A DNA stretch of 64,000 bases from positions 124,001 through 188,000 of the IMG/VR virus record IMGVR_UViG_3300018891_000001. One strand, given 5' to 3'. The notes under the pieces are model-generated. The model saw only the letters and a program-made list of their open reading frames with translations, did no database searches and was not told the DNA's origin. The position numbers and the translations under genes were made by a program. Of this stretch, positions 18,200 through 63,995 are shown piece after piece (the stretch's first letter is position 1; each line of letters starts with the position of its first letter).

Positions 18200-19690
18200 A
18201 TGTGCCAAGGCATACACGTTCATGTACATAGTGAAGAAAGTTTGCTTGACGGATTATCAACTGTCAAACAGCTTGTTGCTAAAGCCAAAGCACTTGGACA
18301 TATTGCTTTAGGGCTTACCGATCATGGTGTGTGTGGAGCTATACCGGATTTTATTTCTGAGTGTCAGAAACAGGGTATTAAACCTATTCCGGGATGCGAG
18401 GTATACATGACCAAAAATCGTTTAATCAAAGGAAAAGAACTAGAAGAAATGCGTATCAAACTTTGCACCAAATACAAAATTACAGATCATAAAGGCAAGC
18501 CTAAGATGAAATTACTCCAAGATTTTCTTCGAAAAGTAGAAAAGAATTATGCTTGCTTTGAAGAAGAGGCTCGCATCCTATTAAAAGACTATCTCATGTC
18601 AAGTGACCCTGAACCCAAGGAGGAGTCACTTGATTTATTTTCCATCTATGAAATAGATTTTAATGAACCTCTAGAAGCGAAAAAAGCTCCCGATACTGTT
18701 GAAGAAAAAATAGAAGCTTTTAAAAAAGAAGTGTTTCACTACCTTGACTATGGTAATTTTCACATGGTGTTACTTGCCATGAATAATCAAGGACTGGAGG
18801 ATTTATATGAGATTGTTTCTGATGCTCATATTAATGGCTTCTATTCTGATCCTCGTACCGACCTTGATTTTATTCGAGAAAGAGGTCTGGGCAGGAATCT
18901 TATTGCTACTTCAGCCTGTCTTGGGAGTTATTTTAGTCAGCTCTGTTTGGCAGGAAGAATTGAAGAAGCGAAACAACATATTTTAGAATGCAAAGAAACC
19001 TTTGCACATTTTTATTTAGAAAAACAGGCTACCTCTATCCCCGAACAACTTTATATTAACCAAATCATTGATCAATTAGCCGTTGAAACCAATACACCGA
19101 AAATTCTCACCACAGACGTACACTATGCCAATAAAGAAGACAATCACATTCATGATATCCTTGTTACATCTTCTATTGGTAAGTGTATCTCTGATGAAAA
19201 CCGTATGAAATACGCCCATGAATTCTGGATGAAAAATGACGAAGAAATGATGGAAAAATGTTACGATCCAGAAGCATGGGGGAATACACTAAAAATTGCT
19301 GAAATGGTCAATGTTTCCTTACCGAAGGAGCCATTATTTCCAAAATTCTTGATTGAAGGAAATGAAACGGCTGATGAACTATTGAGAAAGAAAGCATGGA
19401 ACGGTTTATTCGAAATGGCATTAACCGAAGATATTGATATTCAAGAATACTCTCGAAGACTCCAATATGAACTGGATGTTATTTGTACAGAAGGATTTTC
19501 AGATTATTTCTTGATTACCGAAGATAAAATGAGAGCCACAAATGAAGCCGGCTTTTTAACAGGTCCGGGGCGTGGTTCGGGTGCAGGCTCACTCGTATGT
19601 CGATGCCTCAAAATTACTGCACTGGATCCGATTAAAGAAAACCTACTATTTGAGCGTTTCCTAAATCCAGAACGTGCTGGATATCCTGAT
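18200..19690 (+). CDS. dnaE: DNA polymerase III alpha, exon 1 (PHP domain and start of polymerase domain)
   Basis: HVHSEESLLDG, TDHG, SACLGS, GPGRGSGAGSLV, FERFLNPERAGYPD; the join 18200-19690 + 21004-21683 + 23092-24451 is 3531 nt and in frame. Confidence 0.9.
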
Positions 19691-21003
19691 TGGCTAACAA
19701 AATTTGTAGCGTAATGCATTTCATTTTCCTATCAATAATGATACAATAGATATAGATTATTGATAGGAGGAAGCAATAATGGGGAAACTTTATACGTATG
19801 ATATTATCTGTGAAACATGTGGAGAAACTGTAACTGTTACACGTTCAAGAAAAAATTCGAGATATTGCTCTAAATCGTGTGCATCCAAAGCGCCTCGAAA
19901 ATACAAAAACATCAACGAACAAGAAATTATTGATATGTATCAAAACGGATTATCCTTACAAAAGATTGAACAACAAACAAGCATCAAGATAGAGAAAATA
20001 AGAAAGATCATTCATCAAATAGGAATTATGAGAAGCAATAAAGAAAACTCTCGCAAATATCATATTAATCATGATTATTTTGAAACGATTGATACTGAAC
20101 ACAAAGCATATTGGCTTGGATTTATATATGCTGATGGATATATTGCAAAAAGAAAGGGTAATCAAAAATGCATCGGTATTGCATTATCAAGAAAAGATGA
20201 AGATCATATAAAAAATTTCTTGTTCGACGTTGATTCTAATTATGTAATTAGACAGTATACAGGAACAACTCCAGATGGAAAAGATTTTGAATATTCAAGA
20301 GTGATTATTACATCTGATAAAATGTTCGATGATTTATTGAATAAAGGAGTTGTCGAACACAAAACATTGGTTCTTCAATTTCCTTCATTCGAAATTGTCC
20401 CAAAAACTTTAATGCATCATTTTATCAGAGGATACTTTGATGGTGATGGATCATTCTCAAAATGCATAGAAGGATATACTCTTCCATATAAAGTGAGAAT
20501 CTGTGGAACAAAAGAGTTTCTTCAAGGCATTGAGAATTTTATTGGAATCAAAGGGAATTACAGTAAACGTCATAAAGATGATAAGAATAATTGGACATTA
20601 GAATACTCCAATAAAGAAGATATCCTTCAATTTGCTAATACCATTTACGAATATTGCACAATCTGCTTAAACAGAAAATATCAACGCTACAAAGAAATGT
20701 TGGATCAGTCGTCCTAATAAGAAACTATTAGGATTATCACTCGGTGAATTGCTGGAAACTCCTTAGAGCCTTATACACCACAACGTAGTTGGAAACGACA
20801 AGCGTGATGGTTTGAAAAGTATAAGGATTGGACAATCAGCAGCCAAGCTCCTAAGTCACAAGATATGGAGAAGGTTCAACGACCATCCCGTGGGAGGGAG
20901 TAGGGCAAATGCCCGAAGTGCCGAGCACCCAAACCGTTAAGGTCGGTGGGTGAAGATATGGTCTATTCCCTATACAAATATGTCGAAAGACAGGGTATCA
21001 AAG
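19691..21003 (+). mobile_element. Group I intron 1 in dnaE, HEG in P1 loop
   Basis: Core motifs gaattgctggaaac, aatcagcagccaag, gttcaacgacca, aagatatggtcta; ends in G; removal restores PD|LDIDY; the U.G register at the 5' site is not clean, so the boundary may be off by 1. Confidence 0.85.
19779..20717 (+). CDS. Intron-encoded LAGLIDADG homing endonuclease with N-terminal Zn finger and HTH
   Basis: YWLGFIYADG and FIRGYFDGDG; CETCG...YCSKSC. Confidence 0.9.
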   Translation: MGKLYTYDIICETCGETVTVTRSRKNSRYCSKSCASKAPRKYKNINEQEIIDMYQNGLSLQKIEQQTSIKIEKIRKIIHQIGIMRSNKENSRKYHINHDYFETIDTEHKAYWLGFIYADGYIAKRKGNQKCIGIALSRKDEDHIKNFLFDVDSNYVIRQYTGTTPDGKDFEYSRVIITSDKMFDDLLNKGVVEHKTLVLQFPSFEIVPKTLMHHFIRGYFDGDGSFSKCIEGYTLPYKVRICGTKEFLQGIENFIGIKGNYSKRHKDDKNNWTLEYSNKEDILQFANTIYEYCTICLNRKYQRYKEMLDQSS

Positions 21004-21683
21004 CTCGATATTGATTACTCATATGATGGAGCACGATGGGTACAAATGTACTTAAAAGAAAAATACGGGCATGATAAAGTTGCACAAATTGGAACCAAAG
21101 GAACGTTAGCAGCAAGAGCCGTCATCCGTCGTGTCGGAAAAACATTAGGATTAGAAAACGCCACAGTGGATGCTTTTGCAAAATCGATTCCTTCCCGTCC
21201 TGGTATTACATTAAATGAGGCTTATGCTGAAGAACCAATGGTACAGCAATATGCACAAACTTATCCGCAGTGGTGGGAAGCGGCAAAAGCATTAGAAGGT
21301 CATATTAGTCAAGTCGGAGTTCATGCCGGAGGAATTGTCTTATCTCCTGTTCCTCTCACCAAAGTCACTCCACTTCGCTTGGATAGTGAAGGACTTGAAA
21401 CAACCCAATATGATATGAAGTGGATTGAAAAATTCCTCGTCAAATTTGATATTTTAAAACTCGATACGCTGGACTTGATTAAAAAGACGATGGAGTTTGC
21501 AGGTATTTGGGGAACGATGGATCCGTATCGAGATATTGATGTTAATGATCCAAACATCTATAAAAATGTGTATAATCAACTCAATTTATCTGGTATCTTC
21601 CAGTGTGAATCCGATCTGTTTCGAAAAATTATTAATGATATGAAACCCAACTCTTTTGCTGATATTTCGGTTATTGTTGCCCT
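21004..21683 (+). CDS. dnaE: DNA polymerase III alpha, exon 2
   Basis: LDIDYS, VAQIGT, GVHAGGIVLS, LVKFDILKL, GIFQCES. Confidence 0.9.
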
Positions 21684-23091
21684 TAACTAATCCGGTCAAT
21701 CGGGGGCAACATTAAAAAAGCGGGTTATATGCTGGAACACCCTAAAGCCTACGGTACGCATAGCGTAACAATCCGTATGGATGTAACAATGGGCAACCAG
21801 CAGGGAAGGGTAGCTCGAAACCCACCCTCAGAGACTGGGAGAATATCTCCGCTTATGGAAGGTAACGACCATAAGCAACCCCGCTAGGATTGCTGTGAAG
21901 CAAACCGAATGATACAGTCCGACCTCTAGTGAAAGCTAGAGAGCTAGGCAGAAATGACCTAGCCATTATGACAAACAGGTTGACAACATATGAATTAATT
22001 CAAGGCGCTTATAAGGAGTCCAATATGGAATAGCAAGGTATTTGTAACCATGTTGCAGCAACAATTCCTTTTTAATCTGATCACGTTGTTGAATTTTTAA
22101 CAAGTCATCTTCACCGTTAGGATGATATTTCTCATACAAGTGGTAATGTTGCTCACCATGGTATTCAACACAAAGCTTATATTCTTCATAAAAAGCATCC
22201 ACATAAAGATGTTTACCAGTTGCAGAATTAATCAAGAAATCAAAAGTCTTTTCAGTAACCATTGGTGTATCTAAAATAGATGAAATCATTTTAAAGTAAT
22301 ATTGAGCAGTTCGATTTTCCTTTGTATAGTTTGCAGGAACACCGGCAAGCTCACACGCTTTGACAAATCCGAATCGGCGTTTATAAGTTTCACTAGAAAA
22401 CTTCGATTCAGCATCCACTAATGATTGAGATACAAAACCAAAATCGTTGTAAAGATTTCTTAATTCTTGCAGCAATTCCTCATCTGGTATGTTTTGTGGA
22501 TTTGCAATTGAACAACCTGCTTTTTCAAAAGCATTGTTCCATGATTTGAATAAACGATAAATAACATTTTGCGAATATTTACCTTGCTTTAAATAAAGCT
22601 CCTTAGTAATGCGACCATTAGTTTGAAAGACTGATTGAATATCAGCAATTACTTCATCTTCTGTGTAAATCGTTTTTTTACAAGCACTTGCAGGATTTTG
22701 TTGATCACTAATTGGAACACCGGCTTCACTATAAGCTAAATACACAGAAGCAAATTCTCTTTTAAAAGTATCGTATTTCCATTTTCCATAAGTATTAATA
22801 ATAGCTTGAGTGACCTTGCCATGTTCCTTATATAATCGTTGAATTTCAGTAATCAATGATTCACGAGTAGGTTTAATATCTTCTCCTGTAAGAGCTTTAG
22901 TAAAATGAGAAATGCCACCAAACTTTTTAAGTTGATAATACGTGTAACGAGAATGATTCATATAAATCTGTTTGGTGACTTTCCCGTATTCTTTGTAAAG
23001 TCTTTCAAAATCATTTAATAATTGCTCATATGTTACGTCCATATATAATTCCTCCTTAAAAGAACCTGTTTGTTATATTGTAACATAAAAG
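21684..23091 (+). mobile_element. Group I intron 2 in dnaE, with antisense HEG
   Basis: P1 gttgccct/ggggcaac with U.G; P10 atcg/cggt; tatatgctggaac, aaccagcagg, ctcagagact, aatgatacagtcc; terminal G 23091; removal restores AL|GRPGP. Confidence 0.9.
21966..23042 (-). CDS. Putative homing endonuclease: helical repeats plus Vsr/DUF559-like PD-(D/E)XK domain, antisense to its intron
   Basis: Repeated E....I..L....GK.T....Y units; LYVDAFYEEYKLCVEYHGEQHY...RDQIKKE; RBS aaggagg. Confidence 0.75.
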   Translation of the reverse strand: MDVTYEQLLNDFERLYKEYGKVTKQIYMNHSRYTYYQLKKFGGISHFTKALTGEDIKPTRESLITEIQRLYKEHGKVTQAIINTYGKWKYDTFKREFASVYLAYSEAGVPISDQQNPASACKKTIYTEDEVIADIQSVFQTNGRITKELYLKQGKYSQNVIYRLFKSWNNAFEKAGCSIANPQNIPDEELLQELRNLYNDFGFVSQSLVDAESKFSSETYKRRFGFVKACELAGVPANYTKENRTAQYYFKMISSILDTPMVTEKTFDFLINSATGKHLYVDAFYEEYKLCVEYHGEQHYHLYEKYHPNGEDDLLKIQQRDQIKKELLLQHGYKYLAIPYWTPYKRLELIHMLSTCLS

Positions 23092-34878: not shown

Positions 34879-35121
34879 CTATCCACAAAAATCTGTGGAT
34901 ATGTGTATAAAAGGGGATGAAAATTTTACAGGGGGGAAACCGGGTGAAAAAATTGCAGGGGGATATCTAGGGGGTGAAAATTTTACAGGGGGATATTTAG
35001 GGGGTGAAAAATTTGCAGGGGGATTTATACACAAGAGGGGAGGGTGAAAATTTTACGGGGGTGTAATTTTTTCAGGGAAAGGATGAAAAATCTGCGGGGA
35101 ACGACTGAAAAATCTGCATCC
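34879..35121. repeat. Putative replication origin: about 8 iterons plus DnaA boxes
   Basis: 20-bp units GG[GA]TGAAAAWWTT[AG]CAGGGG at 34915, 34942, 34972, 35002, 35042, degenerate at 35059, 35081, 35103; DnaA boxes 34879, 34894 (1 mismatch each), 34902, 35025 (perfect). Confidence 0.8.
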
Positions 35122-47311: not shown

Positions 47312-49753
47312 TTATAAAGCAAAGAGGTCTAGCTCCTGTTGCCCCTCAATAACTTGCTTCCGCTTTGGTACACCCTTATTGTATTCTCTAACGTTTTCTA
47401 CTTTCTTGATGACAGAATCAAACATGGATAAATAATCGTCAATGGCTTTACGAGTCCGACGAACATCTTCTTTTGTTGCACGACCGACCTTTGCTTCTTC
47501 TTCTACAAAGCGAATCAATCCTTGAGCAATCTTACGTACTGTATCAATACCGCCTTCAATTGGATTCATGATATAACCTTCATAATCCTGAAACTCCACA
47601 GCTTGCATTTCCTCAAAGGACTGATTTTTGCGGGCAAAGATATCATGTACCGTTTCAATATCTTCAAAGACATTATCATTAAGGAGCTGTTTGGCTAATG
47701 CATTCATGCCGTCAGAACTATCTGCCATGGCACGCAATCCTTCTTCAGAGAATTTTCCTTGCATAGCCATAGCTGCATCAATTTTGCGAGCAATATGTTT
47801 GAGAGCTTTCTCTTGAATCGTATCACGATACACATAGGTGTATACTTTTACATCTTTCGTTTGTTTGAGTCGCCATGAACGACGAGAGGCCTGCATGTAA
47901 TCATATGTGGAATAATCCAATTGGAAAAAGTGGATATTTGGAAAAGCAAGTAAATCTAATCCAACTTTCACCAATCGTGGATTGGTAATAAGAATGTCCC
48001 AATCGTGTTTCTCCATCATTCCATGAAGCCATTGTTCCCGTTGTTGAGAATTCTTTGGCATTCGAATCCCGTCATAGCTTCCACCATTTCGAAGAATTCC
48101 TACATTATAACCTCGACGTTTGAATTCTTCATACAAGTAAATATCCACTTGATTCCATGCTTCTTTTCCGGTGTATTTGACATAAATCAGATTCTTGCGA
48201 CCATGCTGATAAATTTCATCATCAATAATGCGGATCAATTGTTCTACTTTTCTTGGCACAAAATTTACTGGATCAAAAGTACGAGGAACTCCAAGAATAT
48301 GACGATGTCCATCTTTATCATATGTGACAATTTCTTCTACATTAAATGGTGTATCCGCATACTGATACATGGCATTGATAAAGGTAGAAATACTATTCAT
48401 GCCACCTAACCCTTCTGTTGAACGCATGGTTACGGCGACATCATGTGCAATTTGTCGATAAGCATCATGGTGTTCAGAACTCATATCTACCACTACCGGG
48501 ATTTCTCGATATGGCGGTAATGCATATCCCATGTCATTTAGTTCTAAGAAGGCACAATTATTCATCAGATGCATCGGGAATAAATGTGGTGAAATACCTG
48601 GTTTTTGTGAAGTCGTACGACGAATGCGACCATCTCGTGCACGAGTACTTCGCTCATTAATTCCATATCGACGATTAAAGAGTGATTCATCTTGATACGT
48701 AATGCCTTCCCGAAGAAGTCCTTTTGGATTTAAGCGAGCTAGTAAATAAAAAATATCTCGAGCCATTCCACCCATTAATGTCCCCGTTAGCAAAATTTGT
48801 TTTTCAGTATGGTTCACTAATTGGCCAAATGCAGTACCTGTTGTAGAATCTCCACTTTTGTACTCATGAACTTCATCAGCAATTAGGTATTTAAAGAATC
48901 CTCTTGGTAATTTCTTATTGATATACCAAGCTGGAGATACTTTTCGATATCCAGAATCCAGTGGAAGTTTTTCTGGCTGCCATAATACATATCCGCATTC
49001 TTGTTCCTCATCTGCCGGCACCCAACGATTACTATTGTAATCCAACTTCCATTCCTTAATTTCCTCTTTTGGTAAAAGAGAAGTTGGAACTTTGTTTCGG
49101 CAGCGATAATTTTCTTTGGTCATATTCTTTACCCAGTTCTTTGATGACTTGTTGTAAGTTTCAAAGAAATGTTCTTCTGCATATTCACCGCCACGTTCGA
49201 ATAATGGATTCCCACACTTTGGACAATAAAAACTGGTTTCGCCTACCGAATAAAACACATCAGGTCTTCCGCTCTCATAATTCCAGACTTCGTTTCGAAT
49301 CATGCGAACACGATACTCAGGATGAACAACTTGATGCATGCCATCTCCTCGTCGAACATGTCGAATTTGTTCAGGTTCTACGTCCTCTACAGAACGGAAT
49401 GTAATATCAGATTTATGAACACGCCAATCTTTGATAGGCTCCATCGGATAAGTAAACTTGGACAACTCAGAGCTCATGATGTAATATTCCCATTTCTCCG
49501 GTTTCTTGTATTTTATTTTTCCTTTTGCATCCATGTATTGGTTTTGTTCCTGGATTCGTTTTACGTCTAACCAATGTTGAATAATATGTGTTTCTACATT
49601 CGGTATTCGTTCTTTAATTTCCCGTGCCCATTTTTCTACCATAATGGAAGGACACAGGACAATAACCCGCTGTGGTTGAGGATTGGTTTCTACGTTTTGC
49701 AGCATTGCTTCTGTGATGTATGGAACTACTTCACCCATTGTGGTTTTACCTGT
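47312..49753 (-). CDS. SF2 (SNF2/DEAD-like) helicase, exon 2
   Basis: TGKT, IVLCP, LIADEVHEYK, LLTGT, GLDL, QASRRSWR. Confidence 0.85.
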   Translation of the reverse strand, partial: TGKTTMGEVVPYITEAMLQNVETNPQPQRVIVLCPSIMVEKWAREIKERIPNVETHIIQHWLDVKRIQEQNQYMDAKGKIKYKKPEKWEYYIMSSELSKFTYPMEPIKDWRVHKSDITFRSVEDVEPEQIRHVRRGDGMHQVVHPEYRVRMIRNEVWNYESGRPDVFYSVGETSFYCPKCGNPLFERGGEYAEEHFFETYNKSSKNWVKNMTKENYRCRNKVPTSLLPKEEIKEWKLDYNSNRWVPADEEQECGYVLWQPEKLPLDSGYRKVSPAWYINKKLPRGFFKYLIADEVHEYKSGDSTTGTAFGQLVNHTEKQILLTGTLMGGMARDIFYLLARLNPKGLLREGITYQDESLFNRRYGINERSTRARDGRIRRTTSQKPGISPHLFPMHLMNNCAFLELNDMGYALPPYREIPVVVDMSSEHHDAYRQIAHDVAVTMRSTEGLGGMNSISTFINAMYQYADTPFNVEEIVTYDKDGHRHILGVPRTFDPVNFVPRKVEQLIRIIDDEIYQHGRKNLIYVKYTGKEAWNQVDIYLYEEFKRRGYNVGILRNGGSYDGIRMPKNSQQREQWLHGMMEKHDWDILITNPRLVKVGLDLLAFPNIHFFQLDYSTYDYMQASRRSWRLKQTKDVKVYTYVYRDTIQEKALKHIARKIDAAMAMQGKFSEEGLRAMADSSDGMNALAKQLLNDNVFEDIETVHDIFARKNQSFEEMQAVEFQDYEGYIMNPIEGGIDTVRKIAQGLIRFVEEEAKVGRATKEDVRRTRKAIDDYLSMFDSVIKKVENVREYNKGVPKRKQVIEGQQELDLFAL

Positions 49754-50849
49754 CGATACCTTCTAGGTCGGGAATTTAACCCAACCACTCCCCTTTCGGA
49801 GAGGACGAGACTATATCATCACTCAGGCTCGGAGACAGCCTTCATCGTGTCGGGCGCTCGTGTCGGGTTTATTGGTCGGCATCCTCACCCGTTAGTCGTT
49901 GAACCTTCCTAGCTACTCAAGTGCCATTCGCTAGGCTTGGCTGCTGATTGCCATATCCTTTCGGACTTAGGTTTCCAGCAATTCACCCGATTTTACATGG
50001 GCTACAGGATAATGTTTTCGTTCCAGATAAATCGTTGCATTGTTGTAGAGGAAATTTACAAATTTCGCATACAATCCATTTCCACCGAATCGATAACCAA
50101 ATGCTCTTCCATTCTCTTTGTATTTTTCTCTTAGTGGCAATCCGTGTTCATGTAGAACTTTGGAATAAGCATCTAGGAATTCTTTTGTACCAATCACTTC
50201 TATATTCACTTGAGGTCTGGAATTATCTCTCGGATCATAGAAGTAATGAATGCTTCCATCTCCATCGAAATATCCTCTCATAAAATGATGCAATAAATGA
50301 TGTGGCACTTGCTCTTCTGTTGGGAATTGCAAGGTCAATGATTTGGCAGGCGTACAGCCTTTATCAATTAAATCCTGTACAATTTCCATCGATACGAGTT
50401 GTAATCGATAGCATAGATGACCATTCACGTTTCTTGGTTTGATGTCCATTTCAGGAGAGATAAAATCTCGAAATCGCTCAAGATGATTAACATCTTTTTC
50501 AGATAAGCTTAGTTCCAATGTTCCCCGTGGTTCATAAACTGAGCCATCGGCATATAAGAAGCCTAACCAATATGCTTTTTCCTCGGTATCGATTACTTTA
50601 AACGCATCGGTGTTGTGATTGTATTTACTTCTTCCTGTTGTCATCCCTCTGGATTTTATCTGTATCCCATCTGCTTTTAACATTTGGGATAATTTCTTGC
50701 GGTCAAAACCTGTGAGCTCTGAAATCTTTCTCAACGATTTACCTTCCAAAAACATTTGCTTTGCCATTTCATACATGTTATCACTCCCATAGGTATATTT
50801 CCTATACCCATAATAACATGCTATGAAATGCATTACGACCTGTTTGTTA
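49754..50849 (-). mobile_element. Group I intron 3, splitting the SF2 helicase Walker A, HEG in P1 loop
   Basis: P1 atgggt/gcccat with U.G; P10 cctgt/acagg; gaattgctggaaac, aatcagcagccaag, gttcaacgacta, gatatagtct; removal restores GEMG|TGKT. Confidence 0.92.
49967..50776 (-). CDS. Intron-encoded LAGLIDADG homing endonuclease
   Basis: YWLGFLYADG, FMRGYFDGDG; start ATG 50776 with RBS gggagtg. Confidence 0.9.
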   Translation of the reverse strand: MYEMAKQMFLEGKSLRKISELTGFDRKKLSQMLKADGIQIKSRGMTTGRSKYNHNTDAFKVIDTEEKAYWLGFLYADGSVYEPRGTLELSLSEKDVNHLERFRDFISPEMDIKPRNVNGHLCYRLQLVSMEIVQDLIDKGCTPAKSLTLQFPTEEQVPHHLLHHFMRGYFDGDGSIHYFYDPRDNSRPQVNIEVIGTKEFLDAYSKVLHEHGLPLREKYKENGRAFGYRFGGNGLYAKFVNFLYNNATIYLERKHYPVAHVKSGELLET

Positions 50850-59466: not shown

Positions 59467-59949
59467 CGTAAATCTTGGAATTTCATCGCATATACACTTT
59501 GACCATAATTACCAACTACATTGTAATAACCATAACAGGCTATTACAGGAAGGAAGTTGATAAATATGGGTTGGTTATCCACCAAACAAGAAGCAATGAA
59601 ACGCCATTACATTGCGGTATGGCGGTAAACAACAGGTAAAGCGCATCTTTGAATACATATACAAGGATGTAACCATTTACCTTCAAAGGAAATACGAGAA
59701 ATTCTCTCTGCTATTCTCATAGCAGACGAGACCATATCTTCACTCTCTTTCAAGAGGTCCGGCGCTTCGGTTGTAGGAGTTTCACCTGCACCCTACTCCC
59801 TTTCGGGATGGTCGTTACACCTTCCTCATATGAGGCTTGGCACGGGATTGTCTCTCGTTACCGAGTCACTTCCCCCGTTAGCAACGTGTCCTTCTCACGT
59901 CACACCCTGCAAGTACAGGTTCACCGGATTTAACGTGAGCTAACAATTA
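59467..59949 (-). mobile_element. Group I intron 4 in pcrA, no intact HEG
   Basis: P1 cgtgggt/gctcacg with U.G; P10 attgtt/gacgat; aacgggggaa/aatcccgtgccaag, gtaacgacca, aagatatggtct; removal restores VVG|DDYQ. Confidence 0.92.
59603..59722 (+). pseudogene. C-terminal remnant of a LAGLIDADG HEG, antisense to intron 4
   Basis: AITLRYGGKQQVKRIFEYIYKDVTIYLQRKYEKF resembles the C-termini of both intact LAGLIDADG proteins; in-frame TGA at 59597. Confidence 0.65.
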
Positions 59950-60732
59950 ACCCACGACAAACAAATTGTATTGCGGCGCAGCAAGTAATAATAATAATTG
60001 AAATTGTGCATAGTTGGCATCTTGATACTCATCACTCATGACATATTGAAATTTTCCTTGCCAATAATCACGAGCTTCCGGATAATCACGAAGCAAAATC
60101 ACTGTATTCATAATGAGATCGCCAAAATCCATTGCGTTCATTTGCTTCATTTGGAATTGATAATGCATATACACTTGTGCCATGACTTGCTCATCAGCTG
60201 TTTCAGCTACGTGGTATGTACAGTATTCTGGATCCCATAGATTGTTTTTGGCATTATCTATATAGCTGAGTGCATACCCAGGCTTGTATTTGTCTTGAAT
60301 CCCCATTTGCTTATAAATACGCTCAATGACTTGCAAAACATCGCCTGTATCATAAATAACAAACTTGCATCGTTTGTTTTTTTCATCTTGCTCATATCCT
60401 AATAAATGACCGTGTTTGCGTAAAATGCGTACACATAAGCTATGAAATGTACCCATCCAAATGTGCTTCATCGGTTCTTCGCCCACTACTTTTTCTAAAC
60501 GTTCTTTCATTTCCCGAGCAGCTTTATTGGTAAATGTAGCACAAAAGATATTTTTTGCTTGAATTCCTTGCGATAGCATATTAGCAATTCGAACTGTTAA
60601 GGTTTTTGTTTTACCGGACCCGGCTCCCGCTAAAACAAGAACCTGACCATTAATCGTCGTAGCCGCTTCTCGTTGTTCTGGATTAAGTTCATTAAGCATA
60701 TTTGATACTTCCCATAAATTTAATGTAGACAT
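59950..60732 (-). CDS. pcrA: PcrA/UvrD helicase, exon 1
   Basis: LNPEQ, VLAGAGSGKT, TFTNKAAREM, GTFHS, SDEYQDAN.AQ, LFVVG. Confidence 0.92.
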
Positions 60733-61416: not shown

Positions 61417-61620
61417 CTATGAATTTACTATTTCATTCATAGCATCTTCAAAACGCTTTTTAAAGCTCTTGATTTCTTGTTCACGAGCTTTCAGGTTTTC
61501 TGTTAAATTGACATGTCGAGCAGCATTGTTCCACTCTCGAACCATAGAAGCAGATTCATATTTCTTTAGAAGCTCATTAAATACTTTTTGCATTTTTGTT
61601 ATATTAGCCATTTTTATCAC
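61417..61620 (-). CDS. Hypothetical protein
   Basis: RBS ggaggtg. Confidence 0.6.
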   Translation of the reverse strand: MIKMANITKMQKVFNELLKKYESASMVREWNNAARHVNLTENLKAREQEIKSFKKRFEDAMNEIVNS

Positions 61621-61650
61621 CTCCCTTCAAGGAGGTGGTTTATTATCCGA

Positions 61651-63252
61651 TTACGATAAACGACGTTTCGCCTGACTAATTAATAATGGATGTACTTGGG
61701 ATAATTGACGATACAACTCTTCAAACGTTTCCCGAATATCCCATTGTGCTTCTTCGGATGTGCGAAGATTGATCAAATGATAAGCTTCCCATAAATCAAA
61801 ACTAGCAAATATATGACGACGATGTGCATTTAACACCACATATTCGGCTTCATTAGAAAAACCTGCTTCCACTAGTAAATTATACAATTCTTTAGATTGT
61901 TCAGCAATGTCTTTCAAGAGATTCTCTAATCCAGCTTCTTTAATTCTTGGTGGAATGGTAATTCCGAAATGTGGTGTTGGATTGGAAAAGACAAAATCTG
62001 TTTTCCGATTATGTCTTAATAACTGATGCCAGTTAGCTTCAGATACAAAAAATTCGACCTGATATTGGACATGTTTAAATTCTTCTGGTGCCATATCAAA
62101 GTGCTGCATTTCAAACAACAAATCTTTGATGATTTGTTCTTGTTTTTCTTTTCCTAAACACTTGGCTTTGTAATAAGCTGCCTTATACGGCAAATCTTCA
62201 TGTTTCATCAACAATAAAGCAATAATATGCGCAATGATTTCACTTTCCATTTTGACACTGCTTAAAACCGCTGATTTAGATGAAGCGGTTATTGTGTTTC
62301 TTTCTGTAAAATGAGTTTCCATTCGTTTTTTGGAATTTCGCTGATATTGCGAAGGTGTAGCGTATTTCAATAATACTGGTAACACCTTTGAAATCTCAGT
62401 TCGAATATCTTCAGCTAGTTTTTGAGATTCCTTGTGTTTTGAATTACCTAATACTGCGAGTGCATCTCGCCATGCTCGACCATTGGCCGTCATACCAAGT
62501 TGAGTATACATTGAAAGCGGCAAAACATAACGAGCATCTTCAAAAGCCAATTTTTCTAATACTGAATCCTTTTCTTCTGGATATGTTTTCTTGAGATACT
62601 CAAATACTCCCTTAATTAACTGCTCAAATGCATCAAACGCTTTATGAAAAAATTCTTCTACTGTTATACGAATATTTTCACTTTCTTTATCAATAGGATT
62701 ATGCCATTGACCACGTTCAGGTTTTTGGTAACGCTGACTATATTCCGTAATAGATAAGAAAGAATTGGCGAGCTCTAGTTCTGCAGAAGCCAATCGAGAA
62801 ATGCTTTCAATCCCCACATGAGCCACAGCATGTTCAGCAACAGAAGAATGACCATAGCCCACAGTCCACTTTTCGTGAAACTTTCTTGCCTTTTCATCGA
62901 GTTCTTTGAAGGATTCAATGCGTCCTCTAATGTCGTGGTCCTTGAGGGCGATTTGAAGATGTTGTTTAAACGACTTGGGAGAACGTGATACCCAGGCAAA
63001 TAGGGTTGCAATGAACTCTTCTGGCAATCCGACAATTGCATAAACAGGTCCATCCACGTTAGTGACATAGGGAGAAATATCAACTTCTTTTATTTGGTGT
63101 TCGTTCGGGGAAACCCCTTCACCACTTTGGCCAGTTTCGGATTCTTTTTCAGACCCTTCAAGGCGGTCTTGCTTCCGATTCCTATTCTTTTTGGAGTTTG
63201 TTTGATTTTCTTCATGGAAATCATCCTTTATTTCTTTTATTAGCTTAGACAT
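61651..63252 (-). CDS. thyX: FAD-dependent thymidylate synthase, long two-domain form
   Basis: GHSSVAEH, EYSQRY, EDARYVLP, NGRAWRD, QLLRH, INLRTSEEAQWDIR. Confidence 0.88.
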   Translation of the reverse strand: MSKLIKEIKDDFHEENQTNSKKNRNRKQDRLEGSEKESETGQSGEGVSPNEHQIKEVDISPYVTNVDGPVYAIVGLPEEFIATLFAWVSRSPKSFKQHLQIALKDHDIRGRIESFKELDEKARKFHEKWTVGYGHSSVAEHAVAHVGIESISRLASAELELANSFLSITEYSQRYQKPERGQWHNPIDKESENIRITVEEFFHKAFDAFEQLIKGVFEYLKKTYPEEKDSVLEKLAFEDARYVLPLSMYTQLGMTANGRAWRDALAVLGNSKHKESQKLAEDIRTEISKVLPVLLKYATPSQYQRNSKKRMETHFTERNTITASSKSAVLSSVKMESEIIAHIIALLLMKHEDLPYKAAYYKAKCLGKEKQEQIIKDLLFEMQHFDMAPEEFKHVQYQVEFFVSEANWHQLLRHNRKTDFVFSNPTPHFGITIPPRIKEAGLENLLKDIAEQSKELYNLLVEAGFSNEAEYVVLNAHRRHIFASFDLWEAYHLINLRTSEEAQWDIRETFEELYRQLSQVHPLLISQAKRRLS

Positions 63253-63282
63253 ATTGCTTCCTCCTTGTTCTTAGAATGGCAA

Positions 63283-63412
63283 CGCCATCACCTGAAACCG
63301 AGAAAAGGTGGTCGAGGTGTGTCTACCCTCCTTTTTATAGATTTGTTGTATTACGCATATCAAACCTCGGTTTCACATGATGACGGGCGAGCGACTCCCT
63401 CCTGCACTCGCC
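63283..63412 (-). ncRNA. Putative structured RNA in the thyX leader
   Basis: Four helices; three G.U pairs on minus become C-A mismatches on plus. Confidence 0.5.
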
Positions 63413-63446
63413 AGTGTTTTATGATATGAAAGCGATGAAAACAAAA

Positions 63447-63995
63447 TTACTGTACGGAAATTGCTTTCCCGTATACAAATTCTTCTACCGGAAGTTGCTC
63501 ACCAGCTACAAACCAGTTTTTAAAACGATCTGGCTGAATACCTTGTGTTCCTGGTGTAGCTTTCTTTACAAGCATGGTAGTTTGACATTCATGGCAATCT
63601 ACCATTTTTACTCCTTCTGGAATGTAATGGTTTCCTGTATTATTGCATTTAGGACAACGATAACGGCATCTGTAATGATTAATGCCATTTTTCACTTTAA
63701 TGCCCGTGTTATAATAAGAAGGAATCTCTTGTTCTTTTTTCTCTATCTCCTCCAATGCTTCTTCCATTGAAGAAGGTTCCTTCGTAATAACAACATTGTT
63801 GGTTACATGAGTTACAGTTGGCGTTTTTTCTTCTGATATGGCATGTTCAATTTTCATTTCTTTCGGTGTTACTGAAATTGAAAAGAAATGAAATAGGCCA
63901 TCAATCATTCTGTCAATCTGTGGAGAGGTGGCTTGTTCTACTTCTAATAATGCTTGTTGATGCTTATTTTGAACTTGTAATAATACTTTAGGCAT
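63447..63995 (-). CDS. Hypothetical protein with C-terminal Zn ribbon
   Basis: YRCPKC...CHEC. Confidence 0.65.
   Translation of the reverse strand: MPKVLLQVQNKHQQALLEVEQATSPQIDRMIDGLFHFFSISVTPKEMKIEHAISEEKTPTVTHVTNNVVITKEPSSMEEALEEIEKKEQEIPSYYNTGIKVKNGINHYRCRYRCPKCNNTGNHYIPEGVKMVDCHECQTTMLVKKATPGTQGIQPDRFKNWFVAGEQLPVEEFVYGKAISVQ

Follow-up and report, generated by a model that had tools for sequence, protein, structure and literature searches.

A covarying leader RNA with a start-codon-less Shine-Dalgarno core upstream of thyX in ~200-kb phage-plasmids of Bacillales

The window analysed here is a stretch of 64,000 nucleotides, taken from an IMG/VR virus record (bases 124001-188000) that is 215,870 bp long and carries direct terminal repeats. 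The record was assembled from biocrust metagenomes, and the leader sequence described below is found only in DNA runs of a biocrust metagenome. It represents a ~216-kb Bacillus-type jumbo phage/plasmid, and the region of interest is a DNA replication and nucleotide module that encodes ribonucleotide reductase, DNA polymerase, an FtsK-like protein, helicase, primase and a UvrD-like helicase. The thyX gene of this module (61651-63252, minus strand; identified from ORFs, PHROGs and Pfam Thy1, E = 1.2e-49) encodes a 533-aa flavin-dependent thymidylate synthase and is followed on the same strand by genes for the UvrD-like helicase, a primase and a helicase. Its start codon (AUG, 63250-63252) is preceded at a distance of 7 nt by the Shine-Dalgarno (SD) sequence AAGGAGG (63260-63266) and is separated by 194 non-coding bases from the stop codon of an upstream 182-aa ORF.

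On the thyX (minus) strand, the 3' end of the 182-aa ORF carries a terminator-like hairpin (63453-63473) that was detected in a consensus scan, has a weak tail, CAGUAAUUUU, and may mark the end of the preceding transcript. The next recognizable feature, at 63421-63434, is the block CGCUUUCAUAUCAU, identified by alignment; its core, UUCAUAUC, is kept in the related loci L215, L217/L221 and L219/L220, and within the window it is neither enriched nor recurrent. The structured part of the leader begins with hairpin H1 (63386-63412), predicted by RNAfold as an 8-bp stem, GGCGAGUG/CGCUCGCC, with an 11-nt loop, CAGGAGGGAGU, that bears a purine-rich, SD-like run, GGAGGGAGU, the second such run of the leader. 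H1 is directly followed by the long helix P1, which in the window is a 20-bp stem formed by the strands CGUCAUCA-UG-UGAAACCGAG (63366-63385) and CUCGGUUUCA-GG-UGAUGGCG (63283-63302) and is supported by both RNAfold and covariation; across the 64 kb of the window, P1 is one of only a few long-range inverted repeats. P1 encloses two arms, namely a lineage-specific arm, GUUUG...CAAAU (63341-63365), located in an insertion common to the window and L215 only, and an inner arm, AAAAGG..GGU/ACC..CCUUUU (63303-63336), predicted by RNAfold. The 5' side of the inner arm contains a decoy SD, AAAAAGGAGGG (63326-63336), which was delineated by its duplex energy with the 16S rRNA tail and lacks a start codon at initiating distance, and the 3' side is a pyrimidine strand, ACACCUC...CCACCUUUU (63303-63320), that pairs with the decoy in the RNAfold structure and resembles the 16S rRNA 3' tail. 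A small hairpin, AUGGC-GUU-GCCAU (63276-63288), overlaps the last bases of P1, and P1 itself ends 16 nt 5' of the thyX SD, in agreement with a sequence-only reading of this DNA that had placed a multi-helix leader just upstream of the thyX ribosome-binding site (RBS).

The H1 and P1 helices proposed in that reading are both recovered on the minus strand. The minimum free energy structure and the centroid structure of the leader coincide with the fold described above at -53.4 kcal/mol, compared to -33.5 +/- 3.6 kcal/mol for 200 dinucleotide shuffles, none of which folds as well (z = -5.5). The opposite strand folds more weakly (-44.3 kcal/mol, z = -3.8).

Roughly 590 relatives of the window's ThyX were listed, and loci were gathered from IMG/VR, metagenomes, GTDB genomes, 90% protein clusters with contigs and PLSDB plasmids. 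Homologues of the leader are present 5' of thyX at 13 loci that represent approximately 8 distinct sequence types and encode ThyX proteins 52-75% identical to that of the window; most of the relatives with a long non-coding gap 5' of thyX have the same leader arrangement. The closest relative is L215 (75% ThyX identity). The other members are L003 and L217/L221; L219/L220 (Priestia megaterium); L002/L245 (a Bacillus licheniformis plasmid), L225 (B. velezensis) and L246 (a B. halotolerans plasmid); L007 from Oceanobacillus profundus, with an intein-containing ThyX; L149, which is truncated by the contig end; and L223 (B. cereus) and L247 (B. thuringiensis plasmid pd), in which an 84-aa ORF is inserted between the element and thyX. 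The host replicons in B. licheniformis, B. halotolerans, B. thuringiensis, B. cereus, B. velezensis, P. megaterium and O. profundus are ~200-260 kb in size. The distance from the element to the downstream RBS is 16-70 nt, or 16-43 nt where this is the RBS of thyX itself; in B. cereus and B. thuringiensis, the element lies ~68 nt 5' of the RBS of the 84-aa ORF that precedes thyX. In all four element-bearing records that were searched in full, there is a single copy of the element, at thyX.

The leader sequences were aligned with MAFFT without structural guidance, and P1 was recovered from the alignment by RNAalifold. The helix is 17-22 bp long over the family, and its sequence has been extensively rewritten with preservation of pairing: 17 of the 19 base pairs are doubly compensated in the MAFFT alignment, and the covariation check on the 14-sequence alignment gives 17 of 18. 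Paired positions account for 97.0% of the P1 cells, as opposed to 33-42% after a shift of the 3' partners by 1-3 columns, and none of the 500 column shuffles matches the observed covariation. This is the kind of covariation support that is usually required for a new Rfam family. The three G.U pairs that had been noted as possible on the thyX strand only are indeed present, and the P1 alignment as a whole contains G.U in 13 cells and A.C in none. A covariance model of the element (R1) scores the sense strand at 64-90 bits and the antisense strand at 20-37 bits in every thyX-linked member, with a sense-strand advantage of 37-55 bits in the 11 thyX-linked members. Because of this asymmetry between G.U and A.C cells and of the R1 sense-strand advantage, the selected molecule is taken to be an RNA, read in the direction of thyX. 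The claim of a genuine, strand-specific, conserved structured RNA 5' of thyX is thus borne out by the homologues and the covariation of P1, and the element is very probably a functional RNA.

Conservation of the peripheral features is more restricted. The stem of H1 covaries over three lineages (GGCGAG/CUCGCC, GGGCAA/UUGCCC and GGCAAGG/CCUUGCC), and its loop, GGGAGGGA(G/A)UC, is conserved in the clade that contains the window, but outside this clade (L002, L223, L003, L007) there is a hairpin of different sequence or no clear hairpin at all. The clade of the window keeps H1, the small 3' hairpin and the upstream UUCAUAUC block. The stem of the small 3' hairpin is invariant among the members; the GGC-N3-4-GCC form is found in the window, L215, L217/L221 and L219/L220, and L223 has a longer-looped version of this GGC/GCC hairpin. 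The three-way junction that had been described for the leader does form in the predicted fold of the window sequence, but it is not a family trait: the GUUUG/CAAAU pairing exists only in the window and is lost even in L215, despite the common insertion, and all members other than these two are single long bulged hairpins. The features conserved throughout the family are the pairing of P1, with drifting sequence, and an A/U-rich bulge on the 5' side followed by the core, with the consensus AUAAAGGA-N-GGUGAAACACCCCU-C-AAC.

Upstream of the UUCAUAUC block, we observe a second long hairpin with a stem of ~20 bp or more in L215 (~1150-1230), L217 (~1243-1320) and L219 (~925-1010). Its interior contains GUCAUGUCCCU in both L215 and L217, and the variant GUCACAUCUCC in L219; the window lacks this hairpin and has a coding ORF in the corresponding space.

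The leader does not belong to any known RNA family that we could identify, as the sequence-only reading had anticipated. At gathering thresholds, a search of the whole window against Rfam 15 yields only three group I introns, all away from the leader; at 63100-63600, relaxing the cut-off to E = 10 adds nothing but noise at 12-18 bits, and seven related loci give nothing at the leader. ARAGORN calls no tRNA or tmRNA in the window or in locus L001, and the literature searched describes no structured RNA 5' of thyX. BLAST of the leader against GenBank phages identified no homologue, the only match being a weak one (E = 0.1) to a Vibrio phage tail gene, and BLAST and nhmmer comparisons with the first related loci returned short chance matches only. 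Exact-pattern scans of IMG/VR stayed at the chance level and produced no new members: there were 6 hits for a 16-mer, more than 119 for the 14-mer GGTGAAACACCCCT, and 52 for GAAACCGA-N-TCGGTTTCAG, in line with a roughly estimated chance number. The pattern AAAGGA-N-TGAAACACCCCT gave 9 hits, of which 2 are known members, 5 are identical copies of one sequence without a P1-like stem, and 2 are identical copies of a tRNA/tmRNA-like sequence adjoining an integrase. In the latter sequence (L234:1852-1992, minus strand, and L238), the 20-nt core AAAGGAGCGUGAAACACCCCU is followed by GUUUC within a tRNA/tmRNA-like sequence with a T-arm, on a high-GC viral contig beside a gene that appears integrase-like from its translated sequence; this match was judged coincidental because the pattern scan was expected to yield several chance hits. 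A pattern scan of 400 Bacilli genomes detected the element only in that of Oceanobacillus profundus (G006). A structured 5' leader with a non-initiating SD is of a known kind; the present one is distinguished by a self-masked decoy SD carried on a long covarying helix, and by its association with thyX in ~200-kb phage-plasmids of Bacillales.

Beyond the thyX loci, R1 was run against genomes sampled around that of O. profundus, 150 from its order and 150 from its family. A single good new member emerged, L233 (37.4 bits, E = 7.7e-7 per genome); two other hits, a terminator (L241) and an antisense match in a flagellar operon (L242), were classified as false positives. L233 combines a 16-bp P1 of unrelated sequence with an almost identical core, AAAAAGGAGUUGAAACACCCCUC. 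It belongs to a prophage in the chromosome, where Cro-like early genes flank it on one side and a Mu Gam-like gene on the other. Neither ThyX nor Pfam Thy1 is detectable in the L233 genome, whereas the control genome G006 gives matches. L233 therefore argues against both autoregulation by ThyX and sensing of a thymidylate-specific ligand, and suggests a more general role for the element in phage transcripts that precede genes of DNA metabolism. A second long hairpin is located just 3' of the L233 element.

The most conserved motif of the family is the decoy SD, with the consensus AAAGGA-N-GGUGA, which corresponds to the unused aaggagg without a start codon that had been pointed out in the window. 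With the textbook 3' tail of B. subtilis 16S rRNA, the decoy of the window forms a duplex of -12.7 kcal/mol, and the values for all 10 homologues tested fall between -11.4 and -14.6 kcal/mol; only 4% of the 100-nt windows of this genome reach -13 kcal/mol with the same tail. Among the nine homologues that have a downstream RBS for comparison, the decoy is at least as strong as the true SD (-6 to -12 kcal/mol) in eight, the exception being L149, with -14.7 kcal/mol for the true SD and -13.2 kcal/mol for the decoy. No ATG, GTG or TTG is found in the sequence ~5-10 nt 3' of the decoy and no conserved ORF follows it; likewise, there is no leader peptide or micro-ORF conserved among the homologues. 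The decoy is located ~85 nt 5' of the thyX start codon. The 3' half of the core, CACC(U/C)CU, is invariant or nearly so in the alignments and resembles the 16S tail, to which the CCACCUUUU segment of the window's pyrimidine strand adds a further 16S-tail-like part. The apical hairpin shows no variation in GGUG and CACC, and its purine strand pairs with the pyrimidine strand in different registers depending on the lineage; with an unpaired probability of 0.17-0.54 in the predicted ensemble, the decoy is partly masked. On paper, the GGGAGGG of the H1 loop could kiss the CCCCUC of the core, but this was rejected as the reason for the conservation of the core, which is also retained by clades that lack a G-rich H1 loop.

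We further compared the locus with standard regulatory architectures. The consensus scan finds no terminator 3' of the element, and no sigma-70-like promoter was called at the locus. The unpaired probability of the true SD ranges from 0.23 to 0.69 among the homologues without a pattern, so masking of the true SD by the leader was rejected as inconsistent between homologues. Attenuator-like pairing of the UUCAUAUC block with the 5' strand of P1 is no better than that of random 40-mers, and the block was also rejected as a recurrent phage promoter, given its lack of enrichment in the window and the absence of a sigma-70-like promoter call. P1 has the near-perfect double-stranded form of ~20 bp that is expected of an RNase III site (17-22 bp, 97% of cells paired).

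The leader most likely controls the stability or processing of the mRNA rather than senses a metabolite. In the 5' UTR of cry3A, a STAB-SD, that is, an SD sequence that binds the 30S subunit, blocks RNase J1 (PMC4113751, where the STAB-SD work of Agaisse and Lereclus 1996 is reviewed). At the sequence level, the decoy has two features of a STAB-SD, strong complementarity to the 16S tail in a 5' UTR and no initiating start codon. By analogy, we tentatively favour, among the specific mechanisms considered, a cis-acting leader in which a STAB-SD-like decoy is combined with an RNase III-type duplex. The decoy would dock a 30S subunit through the 3' tail of 16S rRNA without initiating translation, and the docked subunit would shield the mRNA from 5'-to-3' decay by RNase J1, as STAB-SD does and the polypurine 5' stabilizer of phage SP82 reportedly does; the internal anti-SD-like strand would hold the decoy in a partly masked state. 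RNase III could plausibly enter at the near-perfect P1 duplex, and cleavage there would separate the thyX mRNA from the upstream RNA and leave the GGC-N3-4-GCC hairpin and a strong true SD near the new 5' end, which these two features would protect. The observed conservation fits this model because the partner of the conserved core, the host 16S tail, is invariant across hosts, whereas P1 must only stay paired. A weak point is that the decoy is half-buried in the predicted fold and far from the AUG. Moreover, a cut in P1 by RNase III would detach the decoy, so that the two halves of the model may act on different molecules.

The resemblance to the cry3A STAB-SD of B. thuringiensis consists in a 16S-complementary SD without a start codon in the 5' UTR of a replicon of the Bacillus group. 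Unlike in cry3A, the decoy is longer (AAAGGA-N-GGUGA), sits atop a covarying helix of ~20 bp and is partly paired to a built-in mimic of the 16S tail; furthermore, the cry3A STAB-SD is close to the mature 5' end, and the leader's decoy is ~85 nt 5' of the thyX start codon. SD-dependent stabilization without translation has been documented for ermC in Bacillus, and the leader of phage SP82 has an RBS-like 5' stabilizer (Hue 1995, as cited in PMC7509114, which also covers ermC). Similarly to the SP82 stabilizer, the present element is a Bacillus phage leader in which a long RNase III-type hairpin is combined with a non-initiating, RBS-like purine run. The 5' stabilizer of SP82 early RNA, studied by Hue, Cohen and Bechhofer in 1995, reportedly consists of an RNase III site and a polypurine RBS-like sequence. 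In SP82, however, the purine run is 3' of the cleavage site rather than inside the hairpin, and a search with R1 of the whole record of SPO1, a sequenced relative of SP82, found no match at E values up to 1; hence there is no evidence of homology between the SP82/SPO1 sites and the leader. The near-perfect duplex of about two helical turns also resembles the intercistronic RNase III sites between early/middle operon genes of T7/T3 and lambda, which sometimes have a small internal loop; the conserved apical sequence has no counterpart in these sites. Finally, the intramolecular SD/CCUCC-type helix is reminiscent of hairpins in riboswitch platforms, RNA thermometers and translational coupling, but those hairpins mask a functional SD, whereas in the leader the masked SD has no ORF, and the SD in use is outside the structure and escapes consistent masking.

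If the decoy-SD model is true, the STAB-SD idea extends from toxin genes to phage genes of DNA precursor synthesis and gains a regulated, self-masked form of the decoy, and the element could provide a compact stabilizer module for Bacillus expression systems; if it is false, the strongly conserved 20-nt core still implies a specific partner. The element is present on sequenced plasmids of culturable species, namely NZ_CP035189.1 (B. licheniformis), NZ_CP114067.1 (B. halotolerans) and NZ_CP097261.1 (B. thuringiensis), carried by strains SRCM103914, B13 and Gxmzu777-1, respectively, and is therefore directly testable.

The conserved anti-SD-like CACCCCU and the UGAAAC spacer are explained only loosely by the stabilizer/processing model. 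It is conceivable, but unlikely, that the self-masked super-SD and the 16S-tail mimic form a switch that reads ribosomes and is opened by free 30S subunits or by a factor that recognizes SD:anti-SD, so that expression of thyX and the downstream replication genes would be coupled to the translational capacity of the host. A variant in which the element is a true riboswitch for a metabolite of the thymidylate pathway is less likely than such a ribosome-reading switch.

We consider equally unlikely that the element is a translational or stability operator, with a phage or host protein recognizing the apical hairpin (the A-rich bulge, GGUG-AAA-CACC and CCCUCAAC). The T4 proteins RegA, gp32 and gp43 act on their RNA targets by such recognition, and thymidylate synthases autoregulate in a similar manner. 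A stretch of ~20 nt of invariant sequence on a drifting helix is typical of protein operators, and the element is single-copy and gene-specific, but complementarity, either to the 16S tail or among themselves, explains nearly all of the conserved bases. Autoregulation by ThyX, in particular, is disfavoured by the L233 genome, with no detectable ThyX or Thy1, and by the equally basic N-termini of ThyX in leaderless relatives.

The leaderless relatives themselves show diverse arrangements. In nine loci (L004, L008, L018, L020, L021, L145, L150, L222 and L227), thyX abuts the preceding ORF. In L226, an Rfam-confirmed tRNA (954-1077, 49.7 bits) is found directly 5' of thyX; its anticodon loop carries a 56-nt insertion with a purine run and an ACCCC loop. 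In the same slot of L216 and L218 (~1350-1460), there is a sequence resembling a tRNA T-arm and acceptor stem that ends in CCA, although for the T-arm-like sequences of L216, L218 and L007 neither ARAGORN nor Rfam calls a tRNA. Since RNase P and RNase Z excise tRNAs, the occurrence of tRNAs in this slot is at least compatible with the P1 duplex being an alternative means to set the 5' end of the thyX mRNA.

The tRNA or tRNA-like RNAs in the same slot of L216, L218 and L226 could also be taken to favour a processed, stable small RNA acting in trans, in which the SD:anti-SD mimic would titrate 30S subunits or a factor or toxin that targets the 16S tail; the very stable, self-contained fold and the conservation of both the SD and the 16S-tail mimic would suit such a role as well. 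The conservation of the start-codon-less SD above all other parts of the element does favour the decoy option that the sequence-only reading had raised. Nevertheless, no promoter/terminator pair brackets the element, which is always beside a downstream RBS in the same orientation, and one copy per genome would make a poor titrator, so that action in trans is doubtful.

An improbable further option is that the leader acts in processive antitermination or modifies RNA polymerase, in the manner of HK022 put or the EAR element of Bacillales, allowing read-through of downstream terminators. The element is preceded by a terminator-like hairpin and followed, 3' of thyX on the minus strand, by the UvrD-like helicase, primase and helicase genes, and in L233 it lies in a prophage early operon just before the Mu Gam-like gene, all of which would be consistent with such a function. 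There is, however, no similarity to the Rfam models of put or EAR, the SD/anti-SD content would have no role in antitermination, and many close relatives lack the element.

Control of thyX by a riboswitch for folate, dUMP, dTMP, FAD or a related ligand, a possibility suggested by the sequence-only reading, seems still less probable. We found no positive support for folate or nucleotide sensing because the family shares neither a multi-helix junction nor a pocket, because no terminator or consistent SD masking offers an expression platform, and because the L233 element is unlinked to nucleotide synthesis in a genome without detectable thyX. In favour of a riboswitch, the leader is structured and covarying, has invariant unpaired nucleotides and almost always adjoins thyX, and two mutually exclusive apical pairings, GGUG/CACC or GGUGAAAC/GUUUCA, can be drawn. 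Against it, what is conserved has the look of an SD with its anti-SD and not of a pocket for a ligand, and the P1 of ~20 bp would lock the fold.

The notion of a relic without RNA function, be it the RBS hairpin of a lost small ORF (for which the SD:anti-SD hairpin of a real RBS just 3' of thyX, at 61616-61639, shows a possible sequence origin) or an inverted repeat acting in DNA as a protein-binding or recombination site, is very improbable and largely refuted by the covariation, given that the core persists without a start codon over the whole range of ThyX identity from 75% to 52%, with P1 rewritten by compensation, and that the G.U versus A.C asymmetry and the sense-strand advantage of 37-55 bits point to selection on RNA.

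The hairpin at 61616-61639 directly follows the thyX stop codon and consists of the 8-bp stem CACCUCCU-UGAA-GGGAGGUG (-18 kcal/mol, z = -2.65), which sequesters the RBS of the small gene that comes next, with its AUG near 61611. It is a genuine SD:anti-SD hairpin that probably mediates translational coupling to thyX.

Several observations concern the wider phage group. ThyX proteins of ~890 aa are encoded in L007 (1585-4278), L149 (133-2793) and L006 (1525-4197), where a LAGLIDADG-type intein/homing endonuclease domain (PF14528, PF05204) is inserted near the N-terminus; in this phage group, thyX is a hot spot for selfish elements. The same type of ThyX is encoded on circular 'plasmids' of 200-260 kb in Bacillus and Paenibacillus (PLSDB records NZ_CP035189.1, NZ_AP025341.1, NZ_CP021670.1, NZ_CP014843.1, NZ_CP114067.1, NZ_CP097261.1, NZ_CP118109.1 and NZ_CP048288.1), of which 7 of 8 are typed as non-mobilizable, which suggests a group of jumbo phage-plasmids with the window's virus as a member; among GenBank phage records, there is no close relative of this virus.

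All three group I introns of the window exceed the Rfam gathering threshold, with 97.5, 86.3 and 51.5 bits; they are located at 49787-50082 on the minus strand and at 20689-20985 and 21674-21941 on the plus strand. The two plus-strand introns are just 3' of a 504-aa DNA polymerase fragment (18200-19714), and the minus-strand intron is just 5' of an 808-aa helicase ORF (47312-49738), so both the DNA polymerase and the helicase genes appear to be split. The UvrD-like helicase ORF (59947-60732, minus strand) encodes only 261 aa, compared to ~660 aa in most relatives (266 aa as called in L219/L220), and an intron, intein or endonuclease insertion probably interrupts this gene, too. Finally, a non-coding gap at 34900-35060 contains an array of imperfect direct repeats of ~25 nt (GGGGGUGAAAAUUUUACAGGGGGAUAU-like units) that are iteron-like and could represent a replication origin or a binding site for a partition protein or regulator.
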